Positions 8,065 through 38,000 of a stretch of DNA of 64,000 nucleotides are shown in pieces. This stretch comes from Macrostomum lignano (taxonomy: Eukaryota), in NCBI GenBank assembly GCA_002269645.1, contig NIVC01000211.1, forward strand, positions 124,001-188,000, in the 5' to 3' direction. A program made the position numbers and the translations under genes. Positions within the stretch are counted from its first letter, which is position 1; the number at the start of each line of letters is the position of its first letter. The notes under the pieces were generated by a model. That model searched no databases, was not told the DNA's origin, and was given only the letters and a program-made list of their open reading frames with translations.

Positions 8065-10145
8065 GATGTGTTCTTGAAGTCGAAGGTTGTTGTTATAGTC
8101 AATACCGATGACTATAACAACAAACTCCACAGTATCATCCAAGACCAAACCAAATTCCAGTGCCTGGGCACTCATGACACTGTCACCATGTCGCATCCCA
8201 TCCTCAAAGCCGAACAATCTCTTCAAAATTTCCTCCGCAACCATATCAAACAACACATCGAACCAAACATCTATCAGCGTATCTTACCTAGTGGCAGTCA
8301 ACCCGGACAACTCTACGGGGTTTGTAAAGTCCACAAACCTGACAATCCTCTTAGACCAATTGTCTCCATGGTCAACACCGCCGAATACGAAGTTGCCAAG
8401 TACCTGGATTCTCTTATCAAGCCCTGCATTCCTTCCAATTTCATGTCCAAATCCAACAAAGACTTCCTCAATGACCTTCAAAAGTTCAACCCTACGCTCA
8501 ACAGACTCTCTATGTAGTTTTGATGTTGTTTCTCTCTTCACCAACATCCCCCTTGATCTGGCCATTGACTATGCCACTGAGTTGGTGTAACACGAACCCT
8601 CCCACCATGGCCAAGTCGTCCTTTAGAAAACTCCTGGGCTTTGCTACCTCTGGAATCTTTATGTTTGACAATAAATACTAAAGGCAAGTTGATGGCTGTG
8701 CCATGGGAAGCCCCTTGGCCCCCACTCTGGCGAATGTCTGCTTGGCCCATTGGGAAACCGAAAACTGGATGTCTCTCAACTGTGCCCCCAAATTCTACAG
8801 GCGCTACGTCGACGATACGTTTGCCATCTTTGATCAGGAGCAAAAAATTGATCAGTTCCTCCACGCTCTCAACTCCACTCATAAGAACATAAAATTCATG
8901 GTTGAACATGCTGTTGACCAAAGACTCCCCTTCCTGGACATTGACATTGACTACAGTAAGGAAACCCTCTCCACAAAAGTCTTCCGTAAGAAAAGCTTTA
9001 CCAATCTCATTCTCAACTTCTAAGCCACTTGCCCCAGACAATGGAAAACTGGGCTCGTGAGGTTTTGCTCCATAGAGCTTTCACTACCTGTAACACCTGG
9101 ATCAACTTTGACCGGGAGGTGCAGTTCCTCACCAGACTGTTCCATCAAAATGACTACCCCGTTTGTCTGTCCAAAAAATCGTCAACAAGTTCATCTTGGA
9201 CAAAATCACCAAACAAAAACCTGAGCAATCTGTCACCACTGAAGAATTTGAACCCATTCTGCGTCTCCCCTTCCTCGGACCTCCATCTCTAGCCTTTAAA
9301 AACAGAATGCGTAGGTTATTCTTTGCCTCTTTCAATCGTAACATCCGGGTCGTCTTCCACACGAACAAGATTGGGAACTTTGTTAGCAGATTAAAGTCGC
9401 GTGTTCCTTGTACTCTGCGTGCAGGTGTTGTCTACCAATTTAACTGCTCTGTGGACCAGAGCGTCTCCTACGTGGGGAAAACCAAAAGACACCTACACAC
9501 GAGGATCAGGGAACACTGGCTCAAACCATCTGCTATACAAACTCACCTCCTTGAATGCACTAACTGCAATGACTGCAAACCAGAAGAACACTTTAAAATC
9601 ATTGACCAAAGCCATACTGACGCCAAACTTAGAATTCTCGAGGCCCTGCACATAAAAGCTCAGACCCCGAATCTCAACACCCAATTACAACATAGTGGTG
9701 CAGGTCACGTTCTCCGCGTTTTCTGAACAGTGAGTGACACAGTCGTGCACGCTGTGTACACTTAGCTTGACGTTCAATTACCTAAGCTAGCTACCGCCCC
9801 TGATTCTGCCTTTTGACCACTGGACAAGAATTGTGTACATTAGGTTTAACTTTCATTCTCAATCTATAATTCTCTCTCCTACCTACTATACCTATGTATG
9901 TTGTTAAACTAAAGCCAAGTTGTAATCAATTGTTTTCAATCTTACCCTTCTTACCTGTGTACGTTGCAAAAACCAATATTTAATCAATCGCTTTCAATCT
10001 CAATTTCTCAAATCATTCTAATATAATCCTGACGATGCACCATGGCGTGCGAAACGCGTTGAAGTTGTTAGAAATTGAAATCATATTCAAATGTTGATAT
10101 TAAGCTTTCTATTTATTCTTCTCGCCAAGCGAGCAACTCTACCAG
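8065..10145 (+). mobile_element. Penelope-like retroelement (RT + GIY-YIG), 5'-truncated, with stops and frameshifts
   Basis: Pieces: VVIVNTDDYNNK, PLRPIVS, SFDVVSLFTNIP, DGCAMGSPLAPTLANV, RRYVDDTF, LPFLD, and GIY-YIG GVVYQFNC..YVGKTKRHLHTRIREH..LRILEALHI (9163-9726), followed by an AT-rich 3' region containing a hammerhead-like core. Confidence 0.93.
10024..10066 (+). ncRNA. Minimal hammerhead-ribozyme-like motif of the Penelope element
   Basis: CTGACGA (10029-10035), stem II GCAC/GTGC, GAAA (10051-10054), palindromic AACGCGTT (10053-10060); stem I pairs weakly. Confidence 0.6.
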
Positions 10146-10699
10146 CATAAAACATTGGAGACCTAGAAAAGTAATTTTTTTAAATTGAAAAATATAGGAA
10201 GGTTTGCACTCAATTCATACATAGATCCTATTAAGAGGTTTTTAAAAACACTTAGTTTATGAAATTGGTTCAAGAATAACAAAGTTATTACCATTTTACT
10301 GTGAAAATTTCTTTGACCCTTGTAGTAGGCCTAGGCCTATATTTTTCATCAAGGACTATGACTTATAAATATAGGCCTATAGCCTATATAGGCCTAATAA
10401 TAAAAAAAATATTTGAAAATGCAAGTCAAAAATTGTATGAATGTTTTAAATAAAAAATAACAAAGTCAAAAGTAAATAAAGAAATAGTAAATTTTGTAAA
10501 AGAAAATGTTTTTAATAAAAATATAAAAATCAAATTTCAGGATAAAAATTTTTATTTCAACTTTTTATACATCTAGGCTAGGCCTATAGTATTAAATGTC
10601 ATTTTAGCATATAATACCTTTTATTCATGTTTGTGATTTTTTTCTTTATTTTTAGGTAGACATTTTATGGTAGGCCTAGACATAGTGGCAAGTCTACAA

Positions 10700-19133: not shown

Positions 19134-22100
19134 ATGTCATCAATTGATTCGGCTGACACAGAATCCAAGCAATCTGCAGCCGCATCAGCAGAGCCGGCAG
19201 ATGCAAAAGATTCAGAAACCGCTTCAGTTGAAGAACCGAGAAAACCTGTGGTGTTTAAAATGCCGCAGATTTCTGCAGCTCCGGTGTTGAATAAGAAATT
19301 ATTGAAACAGCCGCAGCAGAAGCAGCTGCCAGCAGTAGAAGCAGTCGAGACAGAAACTCAATCAGATAATTCTTCTGATGTCAATCAAACTGAACTCGAA
19401 CCGAAGCAAAATAAAGTCACGCAGCAGCAACAGGAGGGCTCGTCATATATTCAACCGCATTGGGGTGGCCGCTGTCAAGGACCCTACTCTCTGCAGGTGC
19501 TCAAATCTGGTGTAGAAGTTCAGAATTTGGATTTGCAAGGCCGGTCCTGTCTGACTATTGGTCGCCAGAGCGACTGCGACCTGCGCCTGGAGCACCCGTC
19601 ATTGTCCAGGTGGGTTGTCTGGTGGCTGGTGTATGAGAATCATCATTTAATAATCTGCTATGATAATCCATGATAATCCTTGATATGATAATGATAATCT
19701 CCATGATTATCATAATCTATGATAATCCTTTGATAATCCAATATGAGAATCATCATTTGACAATCCACTTTGAGAATCGCCCTTTGATAATCCACTTTGA
19801 GAATTGATAATCTACTATGAGAATTGATAATCCACTATTTAGAATCGATAATCCACTATTGAGAATTGATAATCCACTATTGAGAATTGATAATCCACTA
19901 TTTAGAATTGATAATCCACTATGAGAATTGATAATCCACTATTGAGAATTGATAGTCCACTATTGAGAAATGATAATCCACTATTGAGAATTGATAATCC
20001 ACTATGAGAATTGATAATCCACTATTGAGAATTGATAATCCACTATTGAGAATTGATAATCCACTATTGAGAATTGATAATCCACTATTGAGAATCGATA
20101 ATCCACTATTGAGAATCGATAATCTACTATGAGAAATGATAATCCACTATGAGAAATGATAATCTACTATGATAATTGATAATCCACTATGAGAAATGAT
20201 AATCCACTATGAGAATTGATAATTCACTATTGAGAATCGATAATCCACTATGAAAATTGATAATCCACCATTGAGAATTGATAATCCACTATTGAGAATT
20301 GATAATCCACTATGAGAAATGATAATCCACTATGAGAACTGATAATCCACTATCAGAAATGATAATCTACTATGAGAAATGATAATCCACTATTGAGAAT
20401 TGATAATCCACTATTGAGAATTGATAATCCACTATGAGAATTGATAATCCACTATGAGAATTGATAATCCACTATGAGAATTGATAATCCACTATGAGAA
20501 TTGATAATCCACTATGAGAAATGATAATCCACTATGAGAAATGATAATCTACTATGAGAAACGATAATCCACTATTGAGAATTGATAATCCACTATGAGA
20601 ATCGCCCTTCACAATGCCAAATGCAGGCACCACGCAGTGATGCAGTACAGCGGTGCGGCAGACTCAGCATCTGAGTCTGAGCAGGCGGACTCCACTCGCT
20701 ATCCATCAGGCTGGTACCTGATAGACCTGGGCAGCACACACGGCACTCTGGTTAACAAAGTTAAGCTGCCTCCGCAACAGTACAGACGATTAAGAGTTGG
20801 TCACGTGATCAGGCTGGCCGGCAGCACCCGGCTGCTGGTTCTGCAAGGTCCGGAGAGCGATCAGGAGGCTGAGTCTGAGCTCACCTATACCCAGCTGAAG
20901 GAGAGGAGGGATAGGTAATGCTTTGCCAGCATTTCATTTCTAAACTAGACGATTTTTTGTGTACGATATGCTTTTCCGTTTGTTGTTAATCTAATGGATA
21001 TTTTCGGGGTTTTTTGTTTATCTAATGAAATATTTTCCGAATTTTTTTGTTTATCTGATGGACTAATTTCCGGGTTTTTGTTTATCTGATGAAATATTTT
21101 CCGGGTTTTTTTGTTCATCTGATTGAATATAATGCGGGGTTTTTGTTTATCTACTAGAATATTTTCATGGGTTTTGGATGAAAAAATGTTCGGTTTTTAT
21201 GTTTGTTAATGTAAAGAAAGATTTCCGGGTTTATATCTAATGACTAGTTTCCGAGTTAATTGCAAGCGTAATCAAAAAAGCCTTACAACCAGCCAGTCGA
21301 TTTTATTCAACTCTAAATTCATGAATCAAATTTACGTTTGAGCCTACTGTGTAAGTAGTATAGATATGTCTTGTTTCAAATTCTAATATTATTTTTTTGT
21401 TTTCTTTCCACTTTTAGGCGGCGCATTGAACAGCAGATCAAGCAGAATGCCGAGCTGCAGTCACCCTCCGAAAGGGATGGCAACAGCGGCGGCGGTGGCG
21501 GCTGTACCTGGGGCTTCGCTGAGGATGCAGTTGATGAGGCTGAGGAGTCTGCTGAGCAGCAGCTGTCTGGCAAGGATGGGTAAGTTACTGTAGGCCTCTG
21601 TGATACTGCTCAGTGCCCTGCCAGATCCTCAGTTGCTGGACCAGCCTCCCAGATCCTCAGTTGCTGGGCCAGCCTCTTAGATTATCAGTTGCTGGGCCAG
21701 CCTCCTAGATTATCAGTTGCTGGGCTAGCCTCCCAGATCCTCAGTTGCTGGGCCAGCCTCCCAGATCCTCAGTTGCTGGGCCAGCCTCCCAGATCCTCAG
21801 TTGCTGGGCCAGCCTCCCAGATCCTCAGTTGCTGGGCCAGCCTCCCAGATCCTCAGTTGCTGGGCCAGCCTCCCAGATTCTCAGTTGCTGGGCCAGCCTC
21901 CCAGATTCTCAGTTGCTGGGCCAGCCTCCCAGATCCTCAGTTGCTGGGCCAGCCTCCCAGATCCTCAGTTGCTGGGCCAGCCTCCCAGATCCTCAGTTGC
22001 TGGGCCAGCCTCCCAGATCCTCAGTTGCTGGACCAGCCTCCCAGATCCTCAGTTGCTGGGCCAGCCTCCTAGATTATCAGTTGCTGGGCCAGCCTCCCAG

Positions 22101-23771
22101 ATCCTCAGTTGCTGGGCCAGCCTCCCAGATCCCCAGTTGCGCCTCGAGTGCATATACCTTGTGATGAAGCTGGCCAAAACAGGTCAATAAATATTTTTCT
22201 TCTTTGAGAAAATTATCATCTCAGGTGTGACTGTTTATTCAACTCCATCGTGCAAGCGGCACATTTTATTATTCTCTTTACGTGCCGAAAGCAGCAAAAC
22301 AGACGCCTTTGACTGGAGAAAAGATTTATCCATACAAAAACATATTGAAATCCGCAGCTGCTCCCGTCCTCTTTTGATGCTGAATAGATGCAGGTTGTTT
22401 GCAGAATTTCATAAAGATGACCGGGTGTTGACAGTGCAGTTTGATGAAAATATTGGGAAAGAGTGTGATGTTAAGCAGAGGCGGAACTGTTTAAATAGCG
22501 AAAATTTTCTTTCCTCCAGATGCTCCCATCTTATCGATTTGGAAATCTTTTATTCCCTAATCACTCCCAGATCCCCAGTTTCTGGCATAGATTCACTCCC
22601 AGATCCCCAGTTTCTGGCATAGAGTCACTCCCAGATCCCCAGTTTCTGGCATAGAGTCACTCCCGGATCCCCAATTTGGGAGAGAGTCACTCCCGGATCC
22701 CCAATTTGGGATAGAGTCAGTCCCGGATCCCCAATTTGGGATAGAGTCAATCCCGGATCCCCAATTTGGGAGAGAGTCACTCCCGGATCCCCAATTCGGG
22801 AGAGAGTCACTCCCGGATCCCCAATTTGGGATAGAGTCAGTCCCGGATCCCCAATTTGGGATAGAGTCAGTCCCTGATCCCCAATTTGGGATAGAGTCAC
22901 TCCCTGATCCCCAATTTGGGTTAGAGTCACTCCCTGATCCCAATTTGGGATAGAGTCACTCCCGGATCCCCAATTTGGGATAGAGTCACTCCCGGATCCC
23001 CAATTTAGGATAGAGTCACTCCCTGATCCCCAATTTGTGGAATAAAGTCGCTTCCAGATCCCCAATTTGGGATAGAGTCACTCAAGGATCCTCAAGTTGG
23101 GATAGAGTCACTCAAGGATCCCCAAGTTGGGATAGAGTCACTCCCGGATCCCCAATTTGGGAGTGAGTCACTCCCTGATGGCCTGATCCCCAATTTGGGA
23201 AAGAATCGCTCCCAGATCCCCTGTTTGGGATAAAGTCACTCCCAAATCCCAAATTTGTGGGATAAAGTCACTCCCAGATCCCCAGTTGGTGAGATAAATA
23301 TCCCTAATTTCCAGGGATATCCCAAATCCATTTCAAATCCCATATCCCACAGCTTAACCCTCAACCTCACCTCTCGGTTCCCCAGCTTCAACTCATTTGT
23401 ACTTTTGTACATTTGTACTCTATCTTTGTACTCGGACACGCGCAGCTTTCGGCCGTCCAATATGCAGGTGCGCTTCGGCCTGGGTCGGTAGCGATAATCC
23501 GGATGCTGCTCCATGTGCACCCGCGACAACCGCGACTGCTCCTCGTAGAATGGCTGCTTCTCCTCGGCTGTCATGGCCTTCCACTTGGCCCCGAGAATCT
23601 TCGAGATGCTGGAGTTGTGCATGTCCGGGCAGGCCTTGAGAATCTTGCGCCGCTCCTCCCGGGCCCACACCATGAAGGCGTTCATCGGGCGCTTGACGTG
23701 ATGGCTGCCGCGGCTCGACTGGGACTGCTGGTTGCCGGGCTTGCTTGATGCCAGCTTGCGGGGAGTCTGTG

Positions 23772-23813
<42 letters not shown>

Positions 23814-26785
23814 TCTGTTGCTTCTGCTGCTGCTGTGGCGGCTTGGGAGACGATTTCGAATGCGTCGATGGCGGCGAATGAGGCGACAGACTCTGCGAGG
23901 CGTCAGCTTCCGACAAGGAAATGTCCGGCATGTCGCCCAGAATGGCGGATGGATTCTGGTGATGATGACTGAGCAGTCCTCAGTTGCTGGACCAGCCTCC
24001 CAGATCCTCAGTTGCTGGGCCAGCCTCCTAGATTATCAGTTGCTGGGCCAGCCTCCCAGATCCTCAGTTGCTGGGCCAGCCTCCCAGATCCCCAGTTGCC
24101 CCTCGAGTGCATATACCTTGTGATGAAGCTGGCCAAAACAGGTCAATAAATATTTTTCTTCTTTGAGAAAATTATCATCTCAGGTGTGACTGTTTATTCA
24201 ACTCCATCGTGCAAGCGGCACATTTTATTATTCTCTTTACGTGCCGAAAGCAGCAAAACAGACGCCTTTGACTGGAGAAAAGATTTATCCATACAAAAAC
24301 ATATTGAAATCCGCAGCTGCTCCCGTCCTCTTTTGATGCTGAATAGATGCAGGTTGTTTGCAGAATTTCATAAAGATGACCGGGTGTTGACAGTGCAGTT
24401 TGATGAAAATATTGGGAAAGAGTGTGATGTTAAGCAGAGGCGGAACTGTTTAAATAGCGAAAATTTTCTTTCCTCCAGATGCTCCCATCTTATCGATTTG
24501 GAAATCTTTTATTCCCTAATCACTCCCAGATCCCCAGTTTCTGGCATAGATTCACTCCCAGATCCCCAGTTTCTGGCATAGAGTCACTCCCAGATCCCCA
24601 GTTTCTGGCATAGAGTCACTCCCGGATCCCCAATTTGGGAGAGAGTCACTCCCGGATCCCCAATTTGGGATAGAGTCAGTCCCGGATCCCCAATTTGGGA
24701 TAGAGTCAATCCCGGATCCCCAATTTGGGAGAGAGTCACTCCCGGATCCCCAATTCGGGAGAGAGTCACTCCCGGATCCCCAATTTGGGATAGAGTCAGT
24801 CCCGGATCCCCAATTTGGGATAGAGTCAGTCCCTGATCCCCAATTTGGGATAGAGTCACTCCCTGATCCCCAATTTGGGTTAGAGTCACTCCCTGATCCC
24901 AATTTGGGATAGAGTCACTCCCGGATCCCCAATTTGGGATAGAGTCACTCCCGGATCCCCAATTTAGGATAGAGTCACTCCCTGATCCCCAATTTGTGGA
25001 ATAAAGTCGCTTCCAGATCCCCAATTTGGGATAGAGTCACTCAAGGATCCTCAAGTTGGGATAGAGTCACTCAAGGATCCCCAAGTTGGGATAGAGTCAC
25101 TCCCGGATCCCCAATTTGGGAGTGAGTCACTCCCTGATGGCCTGATCCCCAATTTGGGAAAGAATCGCTCCCAGATCCCCTGTTTGGGATAAAGTCACTC
25201 CCAAATCCCAAATTTGTGGGATAAAGTCACTCCCAGATCCCCAGTTGGTGAGATAAATATCCCCAATTTCCAGGGATATCCCAAATCCATTTCAAATCCC
25301 ATATCCCACAGCTTAACCCTCAACCTCACCTCTCGGTTCCCCAGCTTCAACTCATTTGAGCTGTCAGCGGCAGCTCAGACTGCTCACTCGGAGGCCTACT
25401 CAGCGGACCCGCTGAAGTTCCTACGCGGCTGGTACGATCGGCAGGGACTCGAGGCGCCCAGCTTCAAAGTCGAAGCTCCAACCAGCAGCGGCGAAGTGGA
25501 CGAAATCGACGTACGCGCCGGTCGACTCCTCTGCTGCCGACTTGAACTGCCCGTCGACGGCCCCGACGGTCGGCCAGAAACCGCCGAGGCGCCGATGCCG
25601 CCGGGCACACGAAAACGCGACGCCATCGCAGCCTGCGCTCTGGCCGCCTGCCAACTGCTGGATCGAATGGGCGAACTGGACGCCGATGCTGGCAGCGGGT
25701 CGGCCGGCAGCAGTCGGGAGCGTCGGCTTCGCCAGCTGGCCGAGAACGACTTCTACGAGGAGGACGAGGACGCCTACCTGGACCGCACTGGCCAGTTGGA
25801 GGCGAAACGGCGAGCGCGGATGGCTGCCGCCGCTGCTGCCGCTGAAGGTGCTTCGAAGGCGCCGTCGGGTTCCACGGCGGTGACCTTCGACCAGCTGACG
25901 GCTCGTTGCCAGGCGCTGGACTCCGAGATCGCCGATCTGGAAACTCAGTTAGAAGCGGCCGCGGCTGAGTCTGCCAGCCGGAAGAAGTCGCAGCAGCAGC
26001 AACAACATCAAGCAAATTCAACTTCCAACCAGCTGGACGAGCTGGAAGAGTACATGCGCACTATTAAATCTGGCGGGCTGGATCAGCGAACTCGAACTCA
26101 GATGCGATTGAGACTCATGGCGGCTAAGAAGGAGGCGGCGCTGGCCCACCGGATGCTGGAGAAGGCTCGCCCAGCTGATCTGTCCAGTGTCGGTGCGGCG
26201 ACGAAAGCTCGAGAGCAGCGTCGGATTCCAATGACGGCGCCAACGAGTCAGGTGAAGCAGCCCGAGATGCAGGCATTCACCGGGGAGGAAGTTGAGTCGG
26301 ATGAGCAGCCGGTTGTGAAAGATGACGCTGAGCTTGCTGCTCAACACTCTGCTAATAGTAAAGTTGATGAAGACATGCCGCAGGCGGAACAGCCGCTAGA
26401 AGCGCCGACTGCAACAGCAGAGTCCGGCTCAGCCAAGGTTGAGAAGTTTGCTCCGATTCGTCTGCAGGCGTCTGCAAAGACCAGCTCGTTAGTAGCGGCA
26501 ACAAAGAAGCCTGGCAGTGCCGCTACAAAGATTGCCCGTCCAGCCTGGCTTGATGAGGCTGACGAGACTCCAGCGGCTGTCGCAGAGTCGTCTTTGGCGG
26601 CAAATTCTAAGAAACGAAAGAGGAAAAATCCGCCGCCACCGCCGCCGCCTCCGTCCCGGCCTCATCAGCTCGATGACGTTACTGGAGGCTATGACGCAAC
26701 AGATCCAGACTATGCCCTGTGGTTGCCGCCCTCTGATCAAACTGGTGACGGATCCACTGCGCTCAATGAAAAACTGGGATATTAA
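19134..26785 (+). CDS. SLC4A1AP: Kanadaptin (FHA domain + dsRBD-like region + coiled coil), 4 exons, about 788 aa
   Basis: Exons 19134-19609, 20627-20914, 21418-21579, 25345-26785, all phase-2 GT-AG joins. FHA motifs [22 protein letters not shown] and [11 protein letters not shown]; [14 protein letters not shown]; [13 protein letters not shown]; C-terminal [27 protein letters not shown] is characteristic. Confidence 0.93.
19665..20605. repeat. Minisatellite, 20/21-bp unit, filling kanadaptin intron 1
   Basis: GAGAATTGATAATCCACTAT(T) repeated. Confidence 0.93.
21622..22140 (+). repeat. 28-bp minisatellite (family also at 23977-24095, 53365-53812 and 55495-57308)
   Basis: CCTCAGTTGCTGGGCCAGCCTCCCAGAT, about 18 copies. 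Confidence 0.93.
22555..23290. repeat. 30-bp minisatellite (duplicated at about 24514-25250)
   Basis: TCACTCCCGGATCCCCAATTTGGGATAGAG repeated. Confidence 0.9.
23423..23977 (-). pseudogene. Copied fragment of the SoxD HMG exon (source 32880-33413)
   Basis: Near-identical to 32880-33413 except a CAG tract 7 codons longer and 2 SNPs; contains the complete HMG box; minus-strand ORF 23931-23236. Confidence 0.93.
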
Positions 26786-26809
26786 CGCTGGGATATAGCC
26801 ACAGATATC

Positions 26810-27345
26810 CCTGTCTTACAAATCCTCAAATTTTCAAATCTTACAAATCCTGAAAATATCCTAATCTTGTAGATCCTCAAACATCCCAATCAATTACAAA
26901 TCCTAAAAATATCCCAATCTTGTAGATCCTCAAATATCCCAATCTTGTAGATCCTCAAATATCCCAATCTTGTAGTTCCTCAAATATCCCAATCTTGTAG
27001 ATCCTCAAATATCCCAATCTTGTAGATCCTCAAATATCCCAATCTTGTAGATCCTCAAAATATCCCAATCTTTCAGATCCTTAAATATCCCAATCTTGTA
27101 GATCCTCAAAATATCCCAATCTTGTAGATCCTCAAAATATCCCAATCTTGTAGATCCTCAAATATCCCAATATTGTAGATCCTCAAAATATCCCAATCTT
27201 GCAGATCCTTAAATATCCCAATCTTGTAGATCCTCAAATATCCCAATCTTGTGGATCCTCAAATATCCCAATCTTTTAGATCCTCAAATATTATAATCTT
27301 ACAAATCCTCAAAATATCCCAATCCTAAAGATCCTCAAATATTCC
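26810..27345. repeat. 25/26-bp minisatellite downstream of the kanadaptin stop
   Basis: AAATATCCCAATCTTGTAGATCCTC repeated. Confidence 0.9.
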
Positions 27346-27857
27346 ATTGCCTAAGGTCCTCAGAGGGGAGTTAATATTTTGTATTTAGTAATTCTTAGTT
27401 TTACTTTAGGCAGTCGTTAACTTATATTGCCTTCCTCATTTGTACTTTTAGATTTCTATTCTCGCTGTTCAACTTCAAAGTTGCTTTTTGCAGTTAATAA
27501 ATATAATTATTCGTAAATCGTAATAAAAATGTTGAAATTCAGCATCTTAATTTTGTGCATTTCCTGCATAAAATGCGAATTATATCTGATCACTTGTATT
27601 TAAATTTGGAAATCAATGAGTTTAAACTTAAGTCTAACATTAAAAAATATTTTAATCGGGTTATTACGTCTAATTAAGAAAACAAAATATAGTATTCTGC
27701 TACATATCTAGTACTTGGTTAGTAGTTATTGCCAGTGATTTATTGTGATGAAAGGGTCTGAAATTGCATTAATTATAGATTATAAATGATTTAATAATCA
27801 TTTTATGATTTAAGAAGATCAGGCTGATGTTCAAGCAACACTGGCTTTTGTAAGGCG

Positions 27858-28590
27858 CACCCACTCAAATGAAATGGCGCCCCCACTCAAATGAAATGGC
27901 GCCCCTCACTCAAATGAAATGGCGCCCCACTCAAATAAAATGGCGTCCCTCCCTCTACTAAAAATGCCGCCCCATTCAAATGAAATGGCGCCCCATTCAA
28001 ATGAAATGGCGCCCCATTCAAATGAAATAACGCCCCATTCAAATGAAATGGCGCCCCACTCAAATGAAATGGCGCCCCATTCAAATAAAATGGCGCCCCA
28101 TTCAAAAAAAGTGGCGCCCCCACTCAAATGAAATGGCGCCCCCACTCAAATAAAATGGCGCCCCCACTCAAATGAAATGGCGCCCCATTCAAATGAAATA
28201 ACGCCCCATTCAAATGAAATGGCGCCCCACTCAAATGAAATGGCGCCCCATTCAAATAAAATGGCGCCCCATTCAAATAAAATGGCGCCCCCACTCAAAT
28301 GAAATGGCGCCCCATTCAAATGAAATAACGCCCCATTCAAATGAAATGGCGCCCCACTCAAATGAAATGGCGCCCCATTCAAATAAAATGGCGCCCCATT
28401 CAAATAAAATGGCGCCCCCACTCAAATAAAATGGCGCCCCCACTCAAATAAATGGCGCCCCCACTCAAATAAAATGGCGCCCCCACTCAAATGAAATGGC
28501 GCCCCCACTCAAATGAAATGGCGCCCCCACTAAAATAAAATGGTGTCCCCTTAAATGAAATGGCGCCCCCACGCTAAAAAGGCGCCACCT
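27858..28590. repeat. 21/22-bp GGCGCC-core minisatellite
   Basis: ACTCAAATGAAATGGCGCCCC(C) repeated. Confidence 0.9.
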
Positions 28591-28611
28591 CAAATAAAAT
28601 GGCGCATAAAA

Positions 28612-29693
28612 CTAGGAACAAAATTGGTAATAATTCCGCAGCTTTGTCACTGTCTGCAGTTTGTGCCGGCTAGCCAGATGCTGCACTATGCCACCCAGTG
28701 TGCCCCTGTAGCCATTGTGGCACAGCTGGCATTGCACCTCCCGCTCTGGGCAACTGTTCAGATGGTTGCTACGGTCTCGCCTGAGACACTCCAGGCCGCA
28801 GTGGGGGCACTGGAATGGCGATTGAGAGATTATCTGCTCCAGAGTGCGGCTGCGGTGGCACCAGAACACGCGGGATTGGCAGCTTCTCACTGGGCACCTG
28901 CATTTGGATTGCGTGGCTGAGTCTTGTTGTGATGGGGCTGTTCACCTCCTACAGATCCTCGAGGTCTTGAAAGCCAGGTCATAGACTTGTTTAGGAGGAT
29001 TCTAGATCCTATAGGGGAGATTCTACATGTAGATTTCTATAGGGGAGATTCTAGATTCTTATAGGGGATATTCTAGATTTCTATAGGGGAGATTCTAGAT
29101 TCCTATAGGGGAGATTCTAAATCCAGTAGGGGAGATTCTAGATCCTATGGGGGGATTCTAGATCCTATATGGGAGATTCTAAATCTTATAGGGGAGATTC
29201 TAGATTCCTATAGGGGAGATTCTAAATCCGGTAGGGGAGATTCTAGATCCTATAGGGGAGATTCCAGATCCTATAGGTGAGATTTTAAATCCTATATGGG
29301 AGATTCTAAATCCGGTAGGGGAGATTCTAGATTCCTATAGGAGCGATTCTAGATTCCTATAGGGGAGATTCTAAATCCGGTAGGGGAGATTCTAGATCCT
29401 TCATAGGGAAATTTTAGATTCTATAGGGGGATTCTAGATCCTCTAGGGGAGATTTCTAGCTTCTATAGGAGAGATTCTCGACTCTAATAGGATTCTAAAT
29501 TCTTAACAAAAGAAACAATTAAATCCCTCCCGTCTCAGCAGTACCTTCGCAACAGGCCGCGACCATTCGGGTTCCTCACACAGGTGCCGCACAAAACCCT
29601 GTGGCAGCAGTCGGTTTCGAATACCGCCTTGCTAGGCAGCTGGTCGCAACAGGCGCACTTTAACAATTTGTTGTCAATTGTCGTTAAGGCCAT
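28612..29693 (-). CDS. Small RING-like + TRAF-type zinc-finger protein, 2 exons, with an in-frame TGA in the simplest splice model
   Basis: Exon 29693-29545: MALTTIDNKLLKCACC..DCCHRVLCGTC. Exon 28948-28612: KCRCPVRSC..FQCPHCGLECLRRDRSNHLNSCPEREVQCQLC (TRAF finger). TGA at 28944-28942. Confidence 0.65.
28995..29490. repeat. 21/22-bp minisatellite in the RING/TRAF gene intron
   Basis: CTAGAT(T)CCTATAGGGGAGATT repeated. Confidence 0.88.
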
Positions 29694-30107
29694 TTTTCAA
29701 GATATGGCAGCTAAATGTTGGAGTTTAAGATTGCTAGCTGTTTGCCTGGGCTAAATTTGCGTTTGCATTTTTATGCTGGCTGCATTGGATGAGCCTGCTT
29801 GAAGACATTTTATTCTCTCTCTGTGTACCCTTTTCTGCAAACACAGACAGGCTGAGTGTGTGACCACAAGCCTACGAATAGCATAAATTTTCAGTGTTTA
29901 AGTGCACAGCCGCTAGCTTATTTGAATGGCTCTCTTTCTTAGAATTTAATTCTCCAGCTCTATCTTAGTTAATCACATGTTGCTGCATTAGCAGTCTCCG
30001 TTTACGGTGAACTGTGAACTGTGACACATCGCGGGCTCACAGGCTGAAAGATAAACACGGAGAGGTGGACAGATAGACATTGGGAGGGAGGGCCGGATGC
30101 GAAGGCA

Positions 30108-30222
30108 TAGACATCAAGACAGACAAATAGACAGACAGACACACAGACATGGACAGACAGACAGACAGACGGACAGACAGACAGACACTAAGACAGACAG
30201 ACAGACAGACACTAAGACACCA

Positions 30223-30267
<45 letters not shown>

Positions 30268-30294
30268 CTAAGACACTAAGACACTAAGACACTA

Positions 30295-30388
<94 letters not shown>
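30108..30388. repeat. (GACA)n microsatellite
   Basis: Long AGAC run with AGACACTA variants. Confidence 0.95.
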
Positions 30389-30389
<1 letters not shown>

Positions 30390-32025
30390 TGCATTAAGTT
30401 TCAAACTAAAATAGCAACGCACTGCAAACGCCCTTCGGAATGGATCTGCACAAGCCGGCAGGCCGCTTAACCAGAGAGGCCGAGTCTCAAAAGGGAATAA
30501 ATTTTATTTATTCAATCAAAGCTTTGTTGAAACGACAAAGACAGCAAAAAGCACATTCAATTTTTTAAAAACTCTACAATTTGTGTTTGAGTCGAATAAT
30601 AGGAAAAACAAGGACTAAAAAACTTCTGCAGTGCACTCTGTACTTTAGCCAGTGATAGCTCGTATTAACAATAAACAGTCTTGTATCTCTGAAACGGGTT
30701 ACAATTAAGGTACGTTAAGTACTTTTTATTCACTTTTATAACGTACAAAACTGAGCAGCAAGCTTTGACCTATATAACTAAAACAAAAGCAGTGAAAAAA
30801 ATTAACAAGAACAATATTAACATTTAAAGCAACACTAAAGGTTTATGTTCAAAAAATGTTTTGTTTGTTAAACTGAATAAGGAACAGGGTGGATATTTTT
30901 TAATTACAATCATTCGAACTTATTTTACAATTAATACAGATGAGCGTTATACTACTCGTAGCCAAGACCGCTACAAGTAGTAAAGGTGATATTTTCTGCA
31001 AAAGTTCATCCACAGTTATGAATGGTCTAATTGGTTTTATTGTGCAAACAACAAGCTAATTTTATTTAAACTGTACAACACAACTGACAAAAAAAATTAC
31101 CGAAGGAATGATATTCTAAGAAAACAATAAAAAACGAATTTTTTGGCTTAAAAACAGATGCTATTCAATAAGACAGCTAACAAAACAAAACAAATTAACA
31201 ATAACAACATATAAGAAATATTAATCAAATTTTATGTAAGCCTCATAAAGGTACAGAGAAATGCTCCTTTGTTGAAAGCAAACTGCCAAGTGGAAAATTT
31301 TTATGTTGGGTTCAGGTCTCAGCGTCTCACTCCATAGAAATTGATTGTACTTTTAAAGCCTCAGTTTATTGAGAATGAATGAATGCATGACAATTTGATC
31401 GTTAATCTTCGTTAAGTACTTTTGAAATTCACTTCTACGAATCGATTTGACTTTAACAGTAAATTTTTGCTTAAATTTTAAACTACTTTTATTTAACAAA
31501 CTTCATTTTTTTGCAAGTGATAATCAACTGTAACTTAACTTAATCTCTTTTTAGAATAGACTGTGTACTTTTATTCAATGGCCAACTTCTTACATTAATT
31601 AGACTTTTTTATTTGAATTGCTCTTCTAAAAATCAGCGTCCTCTTTTAAAGTGCAATCGGGTCACTTCGAGTCTCTCCCGAAAAAATGTGTTGTACTTTT
31701 ATGATGTCACTATTAATATTCAATTGTATTTTTAGATTATTATGATTTTAGTATATTGGATTATATGCTTTAAATTGATTGCAATTTCATAGGGTCTTTA
31801 GGGTCTAAAGAGTGAATTATATTGAAGTATTACTTCAAGCTATAATTGAAGTCTAAAGAGTGAAGCTATGAAATTGCAATGTACTTTTAGACTCTTAACC
31901 AACCTTTGAATTGGTTGTACTTTTTTGAGTCTAAAAATCTATCAACCAATTGGTACATTTCTGAGTCGGGAAAATATTTCCTACCGCGCTATGAAAATAT
32001 TTTTAGGTTGATAATATAATTTCTG

Positions 32026-35000
32026 TCAGTACTCCCCGCCGCTGCTGAAATCTCCCTCATCCTCTGCGTCGATCAGCATGGCGCCGCCGCCAGCATCAGA
32101 GTCGGCTTCGTCTTCGACGTCAATTTGGATTTGCCGTTCCTGATCGGCGGCTGTCGCGTCGCGTTGGACGTCACGAATTCCTGCAAACTGCCGCTGATGC
32201 TGCTCGAAGTGACTCAATGTGACGTTTGAGTCCTCTGGGATGGTAACAAATGGAGTGATAGATCAACGCTCAGATCACTGAGCCTCATCAGCTGTTTGTG
32301 ATCTCACTAAAATCAACTAACTGCGCATCGTTGTGATTGACACTCGCAAGGTCACTCTTTTCTATCAGCTAACTTCATTTGTTCATTAAATGGCTTTTAT
32401 ATGCTCATTGTCATTCTCTCTTCTTTCTTTCTGTCACTCTTCGGTCAGCACTCTGTCACTCTTCCACGCACTCTTTTTGTCCCTCTGCCTATCACTGTCT
32501 CTACCTATCACTCTATCTGTCACTCTGCCTGTCACTCTATCTGTCACTCTGCCTGTCACTTTATCTGTCACTCTGCCTATCACTCTATCTGTCACTCTGC
32601 CTGTCACTTTATCTGTCACTCTGCCTATCACTCTATTTGTCTCAATTTATTCATCTGTCACACTCCCCCCGTCACTCACCCGCTGTTCCACCCGAGCCGG
32701 TCACTCCGGTCATCGAACCCACAGTCGACGCCGCCATCCACAGCTGCTGCTGCTGCTGCTGCTGCTGTTTCTGCTGCAGCTTGAGTCCCAGGCCAGCCAC
32801 CGCCGAAGAAGGCGCGGCTGTCGCGGCCGGCGCCGCTGCTGCAGCACTGGGGGAGCTCTTGCCCCGACCTTTCACCAGGTCTTTGTACTCGGACACGCGC
32901 AGCTTTCGGCCGTCCAATATGCAGGTGCGCTTCGGCCTGGGTCGGTAGCGATAATCCGGATGCTGCTCCATGTGCACCCGCGACAACCGCGACTGCTCCT
33001 CGTAGAACGGCTGCTTCTCCTCGGCTGTCATGGCCTTCCACTTGGCCCCGAGAATCTTCGAGATGCTGGAGTTGTGCATGTCCGGGCAGGCCTTGAGAAT
33101 CTTGCGCCGCTCCTCCCGGGCCCACACCATGAAGGCGTTCATCGGGCGCTTGACGTGATGGCTGCCGCGGCTCGACTGGGACTGCTGGTTGCCGGGCTTG
33201 CTTGATGCCAGCTTGCGGGGAGTCTGTGGCTGCTGCTGCTGTTGCTGCTTCTGTTGCTTCTGCTGCTGCTGTGGCGGCTTGGGAGACGATTTCGAATGCG
33301 TCGATGGCGGCGAATGAGGCGACAGACTCTGCGAGGCGTCAGCTTCCGACAAGGAAATGTCCGGCATGTCGCCCAGAATGGCGGATGGATTCTGGTGATG
33401 CTGACTGAGCAGTGAGTGATGATGTTGCTGCTGCTGCTGCTGCTGCTGCTGGATGAGCTGCAAATTTGGTATCGATAGAGTTTAGGTTGCCATGCCAAAC
33501 TAGATTCGTAGAAGCTTTATTAAAGTAGCTATTTCTTAGAAAATTTTAATCCTCACCTGCACAGTGGGCTGTTGGTTGTAGAGGCCCAGACTTCCAGGAG
33601 GCAGCGACAGACCGTGAGCTGCCGCTGCGGCTAGCAGAAACTCCTGCTGCTGTTGCTGCTGCTGCTGCTGCCCGGCAGTGACTGCAGGCAGACTAAAATT
33701 TGTTTAAATTTGTTTTAAAATATTTTGTTGACTTCGTTGACTTTGTCCAAACTAGTTTCTTTTCCAAGCTTAAATAATTTATTTGAAATGAAATCTGTTT
33801 TTTAAATCACCGCCTTTCCGAAACTTACTCAAGTACAAATATCCCAATTCCAAATCTTCACTTTTCAAATATCCCTTTCCAAATCTCCTTATTCCAAATC
33901 TCCCATTCCAAATCTCCCATTCCAAATCTCCCATTCCAAATCTCCTTATTCCAAATCTCCCCATTCCAAATCTCCCATTCCAAATCTCCTTTTTCCAAAT
34001 CTCCCATTCCAAATCTCCTTATTCCAAATCTCCCCATTCCAAATCTCCCATTCCAAATCTCCCATTCAAAATCTCCCCATTCCAAATCTCCCATTCCAAA
34101 TCTCCCCTTTCAAAATCTCCCCTTTCCAAATCTCCCCTTTCCAAATATCCCATTCCAAATCTCCCCATTCCAAATCTCCCATTCCAAATCTCCCCTTTCC
34201 AAATCTCCCCTTTCCAAATATCCCATTCCAAATCTACCCAATACCGAATCTTCCCATTCCAAATCTCCTATTCCTAATCTCCCTTTTCCAAAACTCCTCA
34301 AATCTCTCCATTCCAAATCTCCCCTTTCCAAATCTCCTTAAATCTCCCCTTTTTAAATATAGTTAATAATTTTTCAAATTCTTAAACATCCGAAAAATCC
34401 CAAACTATATAACTTTATTATCAAACCTTAAAAATATGTAAAAATTCCGCAAAAAAGGTCTACATGCAAAGAAAGAGACAAGAACAGCCACTTTGTAATC
34501 GCTAAGCTGATGACTCACCTCAGCTGACTAAAGGCTGCCTGCTGCTGTTGCTGCTGCTGCTGCTGCAGAGGTGGCGCAGGCAGCGTTAGCCCAGCTGCAG
34601 CCAGCAGACTTGCCACCTGTTGCTCCTGCTGGCTGGCCAATGAAATCTTGCCGCCCGTAGTCAAGGCGACCGACTCGTCGCCCCCCTGACAGCAGCGGGT
34701 GGTGGCCGTCCGAAGACCCAGCCGGGGCTTCTTGGACAAATCCTGTTGGCAATTGGAGATGAGAGTTGGGCAGAATCTCCCGTTAGCAGCTTAGTCACAA
34801 AGGGGTCGAGCCAACCCCCCCCCATCCCCCAAGTAGTGATTGCGCAACTTTCCAAACCGAAAGGAAGAATCGAAAGAGGAAAGAAGGGAAACTCGAGAAG
34901 ACGCGTCGCGTCAGGGAGCTCTGCATTCGCTACAGCACAATGGTGTGCTACGTAGGAACTTCGTGGTGAATTTTAAAGAAATTTTTGGTTGGTTGTATGT

Positions 35001-38000
35001 ACTTGTTGTGGATGCCAAGAGGCTAGAGCCCTTCTGCGAATATATTGTTGATTAAACGTCATCATATCTAACTCAGGATTTTATTTTAACCGATTTTGGT
35101 CGCATGAATTCCTGGAGTTCCTGGTCCCGCTGTTAGTTAATGAACCCCACTGATTCAGCCACTGATGATGCTAACAGCCTAGCTAAGCAGCTGGGTTACT
35201 AAAAGCCCGTGGTTACCAAGCCAGCGCGCATGTTCCCTTGAATCCCGCGGGCCAGTCTGCCCTGTCATACACACTGGCTGACCAGAATTCTCCCCCAGGA
35301 CAGGACAGGCTCAAAAAGGTAAACAGATGATGTAATAGACAGCATGATTGCCTTCATGCTGGGGGGAGAGAAGGGAAAAGATGAAAATTGGAAAATTGGA
35401 CGGGCAGAAAAAGACAAAGAAAGAAAACATTGCGAATTTCAAAGACTGGAAATTTGTCCCATCCTCCCAGTCGGTTGCTATGCCGAGGCGGGGGACCCTA
35501 ATAGCCTAAAATGGCCCTTTATAGCTAATCCACTTTCCAGGAAACAATTATAAGTCTGTCTGTTAATCCAGTTTCTAGGAAACAATTATAAGTCTGTCTG
35601 TTAATCCAGTTTCCGCAAAACAATTATAAGTCTTCTGTTAATCCAGTTTCTAGGAAACAATTATAAGTCTGTCTGTTAATCCAGTTTCTAGGAAACAATT
35701 ATAAGTCTGTCTGTTAATCCAGTTTCCAAGAAACAATTATAAGTTTGTCTGTTAATCCAGTTTCTGGGAAACAATTATAAGTCTGTCTGTTAATCCAGTT
35801 TCCAAGAAACAATGTTAAGTCTGTCTGTTAATCCAGTTTCCAGGAAACAATTATAAGTCTGTCTGTTTATCCAGTTTCCAGGAAACAATTATAAGTCTGT
35901 CTGTTTATCCAGTTTCCAAGAAACAATTATAAGTCTGTCTGTTAATCCAGTTTCCAAGAAACAATTATAAGTCTGTCTGTTAATCCAGTTTCTTGGAAAC
36001 AATTATAAGTTTGTCTGTTAATCCAGTTTCTGGGAAACAATTATAAGTCTGTCTGTTAATCCAATTTCTAGGAAACAATTATAAGTCTGTCTGTTAATCC
36101 AGTTTCTAGGAAACAATTATAAGTCTGTCTGTTAATCCAGTTTCTAGGAAACAATTATAAGTCTGTCTGTTAATCCAGTTTCTTGGAAACAATTATAAGT
36201 CTGTCTGTTAATCCAGTTTCTAGGAAACAATTATAAGTCTGTCTGTTAATCCAGTTTCTAGGAAACAATTATAAGTCTGTCTGTTAATCCAGTTTCTTGG
36301 AAACAATTATAAGTCTGTCTGTTAATCCAGTTTCTAGGAAACAATTATAAGTCTGTCTGTTAATCCAGTTTCTAGGAAACAATTATAAGTCTGTCTGTTA
36401 ATCCAGTTTCTAGGAAACAATTATAAGTCTGTCTGCTAATCCAGTTTCTAGGAAACAATTATAAGTCTGTCTGTTAATCCAGTTTCTAGGAAACAATTAT
36501 AAGTCTGTCTGTTAATCCAGTTTCTAGGAAACAATTATAAGTCTGTCTGTTAATACAGTTTCTGGGAAACAATTATAAGTCTGTCTGTTAATCCAGTTTC
36601 CAAGAAACAATGTTAAGTCTGTCTGTTAATCCAGTTTCCAGGAAACAATTATAAGTCTGTCTGTTTATCCAGTTTCCAGGAAACAATTATAAGTCTGTCT
36701 GTTTATCCAGTTTCCAAGAAACAATTATAAGTCTGTCTGTTAATCCAGTTTCCAAGAAACAATTATAAGTCTGTCTGTTAATCCAGTTTCTAGGAAACAA
36801 TTATAAGTCTGACTGTTAATTCAGTTTCTGGGAAACAATTATAAGTCTGTCTGTTAATCCAGTTTCTAGGAAACAATTATAAGTCTGTCTGTTAATCCAG
36901 TTTCTAGGAAACAATTATAAGTCTGTCTGTTAATCCAGTTTCTAGGAAACAATTATAAGTCTGTCTGTTAATCCAGTTTCTAGGAAACAATTATAAATCT
37001 GTCTGTTAATCCAGTTTCTAGGAAACAATTATAAGTCTGTCTGTTAATCCAGTTTCCAAGAAACAATTATAAGTTTGTCTGTTAATCCAGTTTCTGGGAA
37101 ACAATTATAAGTCTGTCTGTTAATCCAGTTTCCAGGAAACAATTATAAGTCTGTCTGTTAATCCAGTTTCCAAGAAACAATTATAAGTTAGTCTGTTAAT
37201 CCAGTTTCTTGGAAACAATTATAAGTCTGTCTGTTAATCCAGTTTCTAGGAAACAATTATAAGTCTGTCTGTTAATCCAGTTTCTAGGAAACAATTATAA
37301 GTCTGACTGTTAATTCAGTTTCTGGGAAACAATTATAAGTCTGTCTGTTAATCCAGTTTCCAAGAAACAATTATAAGTCTGTCTGTTAATCCAGTTTCCA
37401 AGAAACAATTATAAGTCTGTCTGTTAATCCAGTTTCTAGGAAACAATTATAAGTCTGTCTGTTAATCCAGTTTCTAGGAAACAATTATAAGTCTGTCTGT
37501 TAATCCAGTTTCTAGGAAACAATTATAAGTCTGACTGTTAATTCAGTTTCTGGGAAACAATTATAAGTCTGTCTGTTAATCCAGTTTCCAGGAAACAATT
37601 ATAAGTCTGTCTGTTAATCCAGTTTCCGCGAAACAATTATAAGTCTGTCTGTTAATCCAGTTTCCAGGAAACAATTATAAGTCTGTCTGTTAATCCAGTT
37701 TCCAGGAAACAATTTAAGTCTATCTGTCTTCCTGACTAATCGGTCGGGACTCGAGCATGGGACTTAACCGGCTCAGGACTTAAAAGCAGCATCAAGATTT
37801 ATCGGGAAGAAAAATTCTAACAAAAAATTTCCAAATGCAAAAATTATGAATTTGTCTGCCTCAGAATTTGTCTTTTCTCTAGGAAAGAAGAATTCAAAGA
37901 TAAATAATTGCTACAAGCATCAGGTGTAGCGAGAGATTGTTTTTTTCTTTCTATAAGCCTCTGGTGCGCCAGGTGGATTTTTCGGTATTCAAAACGACAC

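Follow-up and report, generated by a model that had tools for sequence, protein, structure and literature searches.

A templated filler and a local SoxD exon fragment at the joint of a tandem duplication in a Macrostomum lignano kanadaptin gene

Human FoSTeS/MMBIR duplications (PLP1, MECP2, and others) show a DUP-NML-DUP arrangement in direct orientation. They are characterized by several join-points per junction with 1-8 nt of microhomology, an insert templated from nearby in cis, and short abortive tracts that precede a long one (PMC6902434). Also documented are insertions at the junctions, tens to hundreds of bp in length and templated nearby, and join-points of 1 bp (PMC6902434). Pol-theta end joining generates tandem duplications in the kb range in Caenorhabditis elegans (brc-1, helq-1, and tnsl-1) and in BRCA1-type tumors, with fillers composed of repeated short copies from beside the joint and the use of microhomology, and the Pol-theta-dependent tandem duplications of C. 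elegans span 1 kb to 1 Mb, some of them with insertions (PMC7368036). A third group of processes, including exon shuffling, Pack-MULE and Helitron capture, and retrocopies, places pieces of coding exons in other genes with the frame open.

The locus described here is in the flatworm Macrostomum lignano, on contig NIVC01000211.1 of assembly Mlig_3_7, and lies within a stretch of 64,000 nucleotides that was analyzed as a whole (the window; features in Table 1). The features listed above for the FoSTeS/MMBIR duplications were all present, including multiple joins, microhomology, a nearby template, and a derived state, and both segments had gained one copy, with the DNA between them still single, as read from the assembly. 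It differed in scale, with 1.4 kb and 0.55 kb compared to tens to hundreds of kb at the human loci, in being a fixed/assembled subgenome difference of a neopolyploid rather than a de novo pathogenic variant, and in that the ancestral state was read from paralogous copies and not from parents. The kb-range size, the microhomology, and the repeated short copies were shared with Pol-theta products, and the opening bases of the SoxD source, which now flanks the joint, recurred in tracts of 7-9 nt. The filler measured 23 nt, but the main patch of 555 nt was outside the usual few to few tens of nt of that class, and it is longer, and its template at 7.5 kb more distant, than in typical templated insertions. 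The tracts usually described for Pol theta are shorter. Compared to gene-fragment capture, the piece was intronic, antisense, and without transposon hallmarks, such that no chimeric protein is expected. The event is a very clean natural case of known error-prone DNA repair that involves no new element, system, or gene, and it is most probably a single event of iterated microhomology-primed template switching of the MMBIR/FoSTeS type with Pol-theta-like stutter.

Table 1. Coordinates of the features of the rearranged kanadaptin locus in the window.
Feature	Position	Strand	Remarks
Kanadaptin exons 1-3	about 19134-19640, 20610-20915, 21416-21579	+	tblastn of P0126; FHA domain start
28-bp minisatellite array	21617-22140		18.7 copies, kanadaptin intron 3; TRF, repeat family D2
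Copy A	22018-23399	+	1,382 bp; 2 mismatches to copy B
Decoy 3' splice site, copy A	23384-23399	+	AG at 23384-23385, then 14 nt of duplicated exon 4 (CTTCAACTCATTTG)
Filler TACTTTTGTACATTTGTACTCTA	23400-23422	+	23 nt; apparently built from abortive short copies made at two template sites downstream
Captured SoxD fragment	23423-23977	- (coding sense)	555 bp; complete HMG box; antisense to kanadaptin
TAG stop after FNSF + 30 novel residues	23489-23491	+	in-silico splice, exon 3 to 23386
Copy B	23977-25358	+	runs straight into remaining exon 4
Kanadaptin-like exon 4 (FHA protein PAA87921.1), last exon	25345-26785	+	P0126 match 25346-26782, 100%
Probable intermediate template CTCATTTGTACTTTT	27435-27449	+	8 nt of unit-end homology + first 7 filler nt
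Fragment source	32880-33413	-	inside SoxD HMG-box exon

The original prediction gave the order as copy A, filler, SoxD fragment, and copy B, and all of its coordinates and features held. The two unit copies aligned over their full length without gaps, differing at 22141 (G) vs. 24100 (C) and 23305 (T) vs. 25264 (C), i.e., by 0.14%, and their identity ended exactly at the unit limits with zero bases of extension on either side. The left breakpoint of the unit (22017/22018) was inside the 28-bp minisatellite array, and in copy A the tail of this array was followed by ~420 bp of unique intron sequence, then by 23.6 copies of a 30-bp minisatellite, and finally by the 3' splice region with the first 14 nt of exon 4. 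A remnant of 4.4 copies of the 28-bp minisatellite opened copy B at 23977 (TRF). The kanadaptin breakpoint had been considered intronic, which was overturned by exon mapping of P0126 that placed the right breakpoint (25358/25359) 14 nt inside the last exon. The net gain from the event was 1,959 bp (unit, filler, and SoxD patch), and the only dispersed near-identical pairs in a self-comparison were the two unit copies and the fragment with its source. A search of the unit for functional RNA gave Rfam matches that were all below the gathering score and no tRNAs.

The Dak-kanadaptin-SoxD locus was present in three copies in Mlig_3_7 (the window, L001, and L002), each on its own contig, with L001 and L002 given overall as about 2% divergent and the range between copies being about 2-5%. 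L001 and L002, which are paralogous or homeologous copies and not parents, carried the empty site as a single unit with an unbroken unit-to-exon boundary and no insert, and their SoxD sequence was confined to SoxD with none in the kanadaptin gene. A look at duplicated chromosome copies had been proposed as a check, and the derived duplication and its insert were missing from both. The position of the patch exactly at the novel joint, along with the single-unit state of L001 and L002 without SoxD insert, agreed with the claim of a single complex event, as did the low A/B divergence relative to that of the locus copies with the claim that it was recent. Two separate events, a tandem duplication and an insertion, would require chance placement of the second exactly at the unit end/start joint, and neither L001 nor L002 contained an intermediate in the form of a duplication without patch or a patch without duplication. 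Two events, or a transposon capture (Helitron, Pack-type, or retrocopy), were considered highly improbable. Transposon capture of gene fragments is common in other genomes, which counts for this explanation together with a possible mobile-element remnant at 8.1-10.1 kb. No inverted repeats of ≥40 nt were found in the region 20-36 kb, the joins were without poly(A) or element ends, and there was no target-site duplication beside the 1,382-bp unit. Transposon or retro capture was rejected on the fragment borders, which were filler and minisatellite and not element termini.

The single junction comprised the unit end, a filler with at least three internal joins, the SoxD segment, and the unit start, and its two template sites lay downstream at 2.1 kb and 7.5 kb with strand and orientation unchanged. 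Four copies of TTTGTAC were found at the left junction as claimed (23396, 23404, 23412, and 23425), this motif occurring 12 times in the window with four of the 12 within 36 bp and a fifth being the source site at 32882. The filler pieces TTTGTACT, TTTGTAC, and TTTGTACTC matched 32882-32890 while TACTTTT and CATTTGTACT matched 27435-27449, two downstream sites that account for the filler except for its final TA. A possible template for this TA is ACTCTATCT, a 9-mer in a 12-bp array (32510-32590) that is too short for significance. The CTCATTTGTACTTTT site occurred once in the window, and the length of its 15-nt match spanning the unit boundary, which was found post hoc, was reached in 1/300 simulations. 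It was present in L001 with one mismatch and is, judged from the sequence, older than the event; it is likely to be a newly recognized intermediate template stop for the first filler bases. The suggested TTTG microhomology at the entry held in that it reproduces most of the filler, but the first hop was probably to 27435-27449 via 8 nt rather than to SoxD, and the homology at the entry join was accordingly 8 nt (CTCATTTG) or 4 nt (TTTG). The hop order within the filler is not unique, as most of it is also obtained by a reading with TTTG only. The right junction had one shared base, the T at 23977, inside the 28-bp minisatellite as described in the original prediction. NAHR was rejected with homology of ≤8 nt at any join, and joins of this kind do not fit repeat-driven misassembly either.

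The captured fragment had the same orientation as its source, with two mismatches and an additional 21 bp of CTG repeat in the fragment. The source had been placed "10 kb downstream", which was right for the direction and was refined to a start-to-start offset of 9,457 bp, the distance from the end of copy B to the start of the source being 7.5 kb. The limits of the SoxD HMG-box exon (~32680-33457) were inferred from splice consensus, and the fragment was within this one exon at 44 nt and 200 nt short of its inferred ends. The source ORF contained a Pfam HMG_box (E 4.9e-25), and the box remained open in the fragment in an ORF of 231 aa (23236-23931, - strand). A four-way SoxD alignment displayed two window-lineage variants common to the fragment and the downstream exon, consistent with the predicted local donor, and on this alignment the donor is the local SoxD lineage. 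The same alignment identified three sites at which the source exon differed and the fragment kept the outgroup state, so that the changes (a 7-glutamine contraction, one His-to-Gln, and one silent) all occurred later in the source and are dated by the fragment, which represents an older state of the exon. The fragment was identical to no SoxD exon in the assembly and combined window-lineage with ancestral states. As it was confined to one exon and a SoxD transcript would be complementary to a nascent + strand, the geometry would also fit a patch templated by SoxD RNA (mRNA or nascent transcript) during repair. This was considered very unlikely, with both a spliced exon-exon joint and poly(A) absent. 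The 27435 stop falls in non-coding-looking sequence upstream of the SoxD exon and in none of the mapped kanadaptin exons, which favors a cis DNA template, and a donor 7.5 kb away in cis is a prediction of DNA-templated switching.

L003 was tried as an independent confirmation and rejected, being identical to the window base for base; L003 is the window itself and the duplication structure therefore rests on one assembly, Mlig_3_7. Many S/L chimeric scaffolds have been reported in this assembly, amounting to about 36% of its length, and 93% of read pairs were reported to map to multiple loci (PMC10733133). These reports, the richness of the region in minisatellites, and the fact that the two A/B differences could in principle be haplotype differences are compatible with an artefact of the PacBio-based assembly by a chimeric read or false haplotype/subgenome duplication. 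Such an origin was judged quite unlikely, since joins sharing ≤8 nt offer an overlapper no misleading repeat, and two chimeric joints 555 bp apart that both derive from <10 kb and are accompanied by a two-site stutter are unlike ligation or assembler chimeras. The mixture of window-lineage and ancestral SoxD states is as expected of an old real copy, and each unit copy had one derived substitution of its own, which fits copies diverging after a real duplication. Exact probes of the junction-spanning ORFs against public assemblies had no match on record. A protein search with the chimeric ORF returned SoxD-group relatives only, at ≤93% over the HMG box, and as even the annotated M. lignano SoxD was not returned, the search is uninformative on other assemblies. 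Among the kanadaptin matches in the Logan assemblies there were no M. lignano proteins, and the UniRef proteins P0122, P0127, and P0128, which come from the older ML2 assembly, had no recorded contig.

Under template switching, the 3' end of a + strand growing rightwards would have come off its template after 14 nt of kanadaptin exon 4 (...CTCATTTG), primed at 27435 via the 8 nt of homology, and copied 7 nt there. Priming on the shared motif TTTGTACT, at the 27435 site and the SoxD exon, would then have been abandoned several times after 1-9 nt, until 555 nt of that exon (32880-33413) were copied productively. The strand would have returned, via one shared T, to a point in the 28-bp minisatellite that lies 1.38 kb upstream of its exit. 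The unit would then have been copied a second time with synthesis continuing. What we infer from the anatomy is this hop order, the rightward course of synthesis, and the enzymes involved. The copied tracts measured ~7, 4, 9, 1, and 555 nt and then became unlimited, matching the described pattern of several switches before a processive replisome takes over (PMC6902434), and this rise in tract length is at most suggestive of replication at a fork that had stalled or collapsed. The claimed templated stutter was in line with that of Pol-theta end joining and iterative template switching (PMC7368036; PMC6902434). A possible though less favored form of the same mechanism is break-based and would start from a double-strand break in the 28-bp minisatellite (22017/22018), for which minisatellites would be plausible sites. 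The left end would invade the sister chromatid, over-copy the unit, and be displaced; Pol theta would join the displaced end to a deeply resected right end by templating on the exposed - strand at +2.1 kb and +7.5 kb, with final annealing at the break terminus via one T. Consistent with this, every template site was found rightward of the presumed break, within 11.4 kb and with the same strand and orientation; stuttered insertions copied beside the joint are the described mark of Pol theta, and tandem duplications that depend on it are documented (PMC7368036). The route requires resection of >11 kb and a Pol theta tract of 555 nt, both at the described upper end. A fork-based and a break-based event would leave an identical product, so the sequence does not separate them.

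The template-switching record is unusually legible, with donors, acceptor, empty site, and mutation polarity all obtained from one assembly. Indels are the predominant form of divergence among the three subgenomes of M. lignano (PMC10733133), and the record provides a concrete mechanism for one of them. The original prediction had missed that the duplicated unit takes in the 3' splice site along with 14 nt of exon 4, and with the breakpoint inside the last exon copy A bears a decoy 3' splice site. The exon 3 donor was GG/GTAAGT at 21579/21580 and the authentic exon 4 acceptor AG was at 25343-25344; the decoy had one mismatch to the latter across the last 86 intron bases and shared ~1.3 kb of upstream context with it. 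Use of the decoy is predicted to truncate kanadaptin, giving a testable prediction for the splicing of one kanadaptin homeolog. The suggested exon capture held for the DNA and failed for a fusion gene, as kanadaptin is on the + strand, the SoxD sense is -, and the + strand from the decoy stops at the TAG after 30 codons. With the fragment antisense to kanadaptin in an enlarged intron 3, no kanadaptin-SoxD fusion protein would result. It is unlikely that the rearrangement is more than a neutral scar and marks the beginning of silencing or divergence for one of the three kanadaptin homeologs. If so, the decoy, being reached first by the polymerase, could divert some transcripts to a truncated, stop-containing isoform, and template-switch scars could make up much of the S/L1/L2 subgenome indel divergence. 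Identity between the 555-nt fragment and each of the three SoxD copies exceeded 99%, and under the same assumption base pairing with SoxD mRNA could occur through the HMG-box antisense stretch that the kanadaptin pre-mRNA would carry.

Self-comparison of the window revealed only two pairs of dispersed near-identical segments outside tandem arrays, namely copies A and B of a unit duplicated within the kanadaptin-like gene and a SoxD fragment with its source in a downstream SoxD exon. The original prediction of copy A, filler, SoxD fragment, and copy B in succession was recovered with all its described features in the sequence. The copies aligned without gaps and differed at two positions, and the match could be extended by 0 bases at either end, while the fragment differed from its source by two substitutions and 21 additional CTG-repeat bases. 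The unit was composed of the tail of a 28-bp array, ~420 bp of unique intronic sequence, 23.6 copies of a 30-bp minisatellite, and the 3' splice region. It also includes the initial 14 nt of exon 4, which places the right breakpoint (25358/25359) within the last exon rather than in the intron.

Coordinates of the duplicated unit, the inserted sequence, and the kanadaptin-like exons
Feature	Position	Strand	Length	Details
Kanadaptin-like exon 1	~19134-19640	+		mapped with PAA87921.1
Kanadaptin-like exon 2	~20610-20915	+		mapped with PAA87921.1
Kanadaptin-like exon 3	21416-21579	+		donor GG/GTAAGT
Unit, copy A	22018-23399		1,382 bp	
Filler between copy A and fragment	23400-23422		23 nt	TACTTTTGTACATTTGTACTCTA
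SoxD fragment	23423-23977		555 bp	matches 32880-33413, same orientation
Unit, copy B	23977-25358		1,382 bp	
Kanadaptin-like exon 4	25345-26785	+		acceptor ccccAG, AG at 25343-25344

The Dak-kanadaptin-SoxD synteny was also identified on two further Mlig_3_7 contigs, L001 (NIVC01003099.1) and L002 (NIVC01001896.1), with kanadaptin gene spans of 5,609 and 5,136 bp, respectively, compared to 7,652 bp in the window. Examination of duplicated copies, proposed earlier as a check of the rearrangement, showed an empty site with a single unit and no patch in both: the unique part of the unit occurred once in each, its end was directly continuous with exon 4, and SoxD sequence was present at SoxD only. 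Only one of the three locus copies therefore carries the patched duplication. The window diverged from L001 and L002 by ~2% in exonic and by 2-5% in unique non-coding sequence. This matches the published description of Mlig_3_7, in which the genome consists of three paralogous subgenomes (S, L1, and L2), ~70% of the assembly falls into three-copy blocks, SNP divergence is ~2.2%, and large-scale differences are chiefly indels (PMC10733133).

A four-way alignment of the fragment, its source in the window, and the SoxD exons of L001 (22568-23122) and L002 (22010-22564) contained five variable sites. At two of these the fragment carried A and G as in the local source versus G and T in L001 and L002, and these shared window-lineage states identify the donor as belonging to this lineage, in agreement with the local SoxD donor first put forward. 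At the other three the fragment matched both outgroups and the local source was the exception, carrying a synonymous T-to-C substitution, a CTG contraction of 21 bp that deletes seven glutamines, and an A-to-C change converting His to Gln. Since all post-event changes are in the functional exon and 0 in the fragment, the latter keeps the older exon state and these three SoxD changes postdate the event. The two differences between copies A and B represented one derived change per copy. Pooled substitutions amounted to four in ~1.9 kb of paired sequence (~0.2%) compared to ~2% or more between locus copies, from which we infer an event about one-tenth as old as the locus-copy split or younger, consistent with its earlier description as recent.

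The kanadaptin-like cluster comprised three GenBank proteins from Mlig_3_7 (GCA_002269645.1), one encoded by the window's own contig (NIVC01000211.1). Across the 2,201 bases compared, junctions included, this contig did not differ from the window; it thus provides no independent evidence, and the structure is read from one assembly. Mlig_3_7 has known chimerism, but an assembly artefact is very unlikely as it would have to combine a pair of chimeric joints with a stutter copied from two sites close by, the joins are without shared repeats, each unit copy has a derived change of its own, and the fragment mixes lineage-specific with ancestral states and is identical to no SoxD exon in the assembly.

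The motif TTTGTAC occurred 12 times on both strands of the 64-kb window; four of these cluster at the left junction in a 36-bp stretch, and one more is the source site. The previously suggested stuttering on a TTTG shared by kanadaptin (CATTTG) and SoxD (CTTTG) reproduced most of the filler, in which TTTGTACT, TTTGTAC, and TTTGTACTC correspond to the beginning of the source over 8, 7, and 9 nt, respectively, and does not account for the four-T run or the second CATTTGTACT. When longer matches were sought, CTCATTTGTACTTTT (23392-23406), which joins the terminal 8 nt of the unit to the initial 7 nt of the filler, occurred once more, at 27435-27449 (site 1), on the same strand, 2.1 kb past the breakpoint and before SoxD. 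A boundary-spanning match of this length arose in one of 300 first-order Markov simulations. CATTTGTACT (23410-23419) also matched site 1, while TTTGTACT was common to site 1 and SoxD and forms a natural bridge between them. L001 carries the site with one mismatch and it is therefore older than the event; site 1 was likely an intermediate template stop. The right junction had one shared base (T at 23977) inside the 28-bp minisatellite (21617-22140; 18.7 copies), bearing out the anticipated ~1 nt overlap.

The most economical path, with its proposed hop order and synthesis direction, would start with a switch from the unit end to site 1 through 8 nt of homology, copying TACTTTT, followed by a short GTAC tract and a return to site 1 copying ATTTGTACT. 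The shared 8-mer would then lead to SoxD for 1 nt; TA may be untemplated or derived from a nearby 12-bp array (9-mer match not significant); and a second visit to SoxD would copy 555 nt before a one-base match into the minisatellite and passage through the unit a second time. Tracts along this path start at a few bases, reach 555, and end up unlimited. Homology at any join was ≤8 nt, ruling out unequal crossing-over and leaving repeat-driven misassembly without its usual cause. Because the patch coincides precisely with the new joint from the end of the unit to its start, a single event is far more economical than two; a two-step origin or transposon capture had no support at the junctions, in repeats, or in L001 and L002.

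The event is a small DUP-NML-DUP complex duplication (two duplicated segments flanking a normal-copy stretch) with a templated junction insertion, a known class. Its features are those reported for iterative template switching (FoSTeS/MMBIR): there are multiple join-points with microhomology or one-base matches, the templates lie close by in cis and share one orientation, and the processive tract is preceded by abortive ones. Work on this mechanism describes junction insertions (11 to 861 bp) copied from sequence close by and includes the idea of "multiple switches before a processive replisome" (PMC6902434). A stutter of short flank copies, the signature ascribed to polymerase theta, was also present in the filler, and in C. 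elegans brc-1 and brd-1 mutants, tandem duplications at the kb-to-Mb scale, some of them carrying insertions, depend on this polymerase (PMC7368036). Fork-based and break-based routes lead to the same product, the latter possibly via a minisatellite break, over-copying from the sister, and joining to the deeply resected opposite end as template. On sequence grounds, the 555-nt tract and rising processivity lead us to lean toward MMBIR-type template switching. A literature search found no papers linking M. lignano with template-switch duplications. The record is unusually complete, as it preserves both donors, two instances of the empty site, the polarity of subsequent changes, and a likely intermediate template stop.

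The Dak1/Dak2 dihydroxyacetone kinase and kanadaptin-like genes follow one another on the + strand, with SoxD tail to tail with kanadaptin on the - strand. In protein searches, the last-exon ORF had 98% full-length identity to a Macrostomum lignano FHA-domain protein, and weaker matches are named kanadaptin in insects. SoxD was identified by a Pfam HMG box (E 4.9e-25) and best matches named SOX-5/6, egl-13, and "SOX group D." A search with the chimeric ORF missed near-identical annotated M. lignano SoxD proteins, so its missing hits are not evidence of absence; these proteins (636-637 aa) are called genes in all three locus contigs. The copied piece lies wholly within one exon (~32680-33457, limits inferred from splice consensus) and includes the whole HMG box. 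Its purely exonic content would suit templating by RNA, but nothing requires RNA and the intermediate stop is in non-coding-looking sequence, and this origin is very unlikely.

The annotated kanadaptin-like protein uses the authentic 3' splice site in copy B. As the unit spans the 3' splice region, copy A holds a second site (AG at 23384-23385) with one difference in the last 86 intron bases. Its use is predicted to add FNSF and 30 new residues before a TAG at 23489-23491, with loss of the C-terminal ~475 residues. The coding sense of the fragment (- strand) is antisense to kanadaptin and a fusion protein is therefore not expected. A 231-codon ORF (23236-23931, -) is still open across the fragment region, which fits a young age and is no evidence of function. 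The unit contained no tRNAs and no Rfam families at gathering score. That the decoy splice site and intronic antisense HMG box already alter expression of one homeolog, and that such scars make up much of subgenome indel divergence, is a speculative and rather unlikely extension.

Introns and intergenic DNA at 20000-37700 were dense with minisatellites (periods 8, 12, 14-15, 20-21, 21-22, 25, 28, 30, and 38 bp), and array lengths varied among the three locus copies. The 28-bp family, within which the unit's left breakpoint falls, recurred inverted at 53364-53808 and 55501-57308 (-), 31-35 kb away with ~86-92% identity, and is thus a dispersed family rather than a local oddity. CTG runs (33421-33452 and 32743-32770) bracket the copied SoxD stretch; copying ended 7 nt short of a ~10-unit CTG run after traversing an internal run of ~21 units, and a hairpin-induced stop is only a weak possibility. 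Two 292-bp segments (49931-50222 and 50542-50833), 100% identical and 611 bp apart, lie among long overlapping ORFs without Pfam match. A short ORF between kanadaptin and SoxD (28612-28890, -) had a weak TRAF-type zinc-finger match below cutoff (E 0.004) and possibly represents an exon from a gene that is not annotated. Divergence among the locus copies was mosaic, as L001 and L002 were 100% identical in the SoxD exon and 94-97% in the kanadaptin intron and exon 4, while the unique intron part of the window was 98.0% identical to L001 and 94.8% to L002, suggesting gene conversion between subgenomes or chimeric assembly consensus. Finally, ~2 kb at ~8087-10148 corresponded to ~110 bp in L001 and contained an ORF (9163-9726, +) whose match to GIY-YIG endonuclease was borderline (22.3 bits versus cutoff 22.6); this segment may be a mobile-element remnant specific to the window's locus copy.
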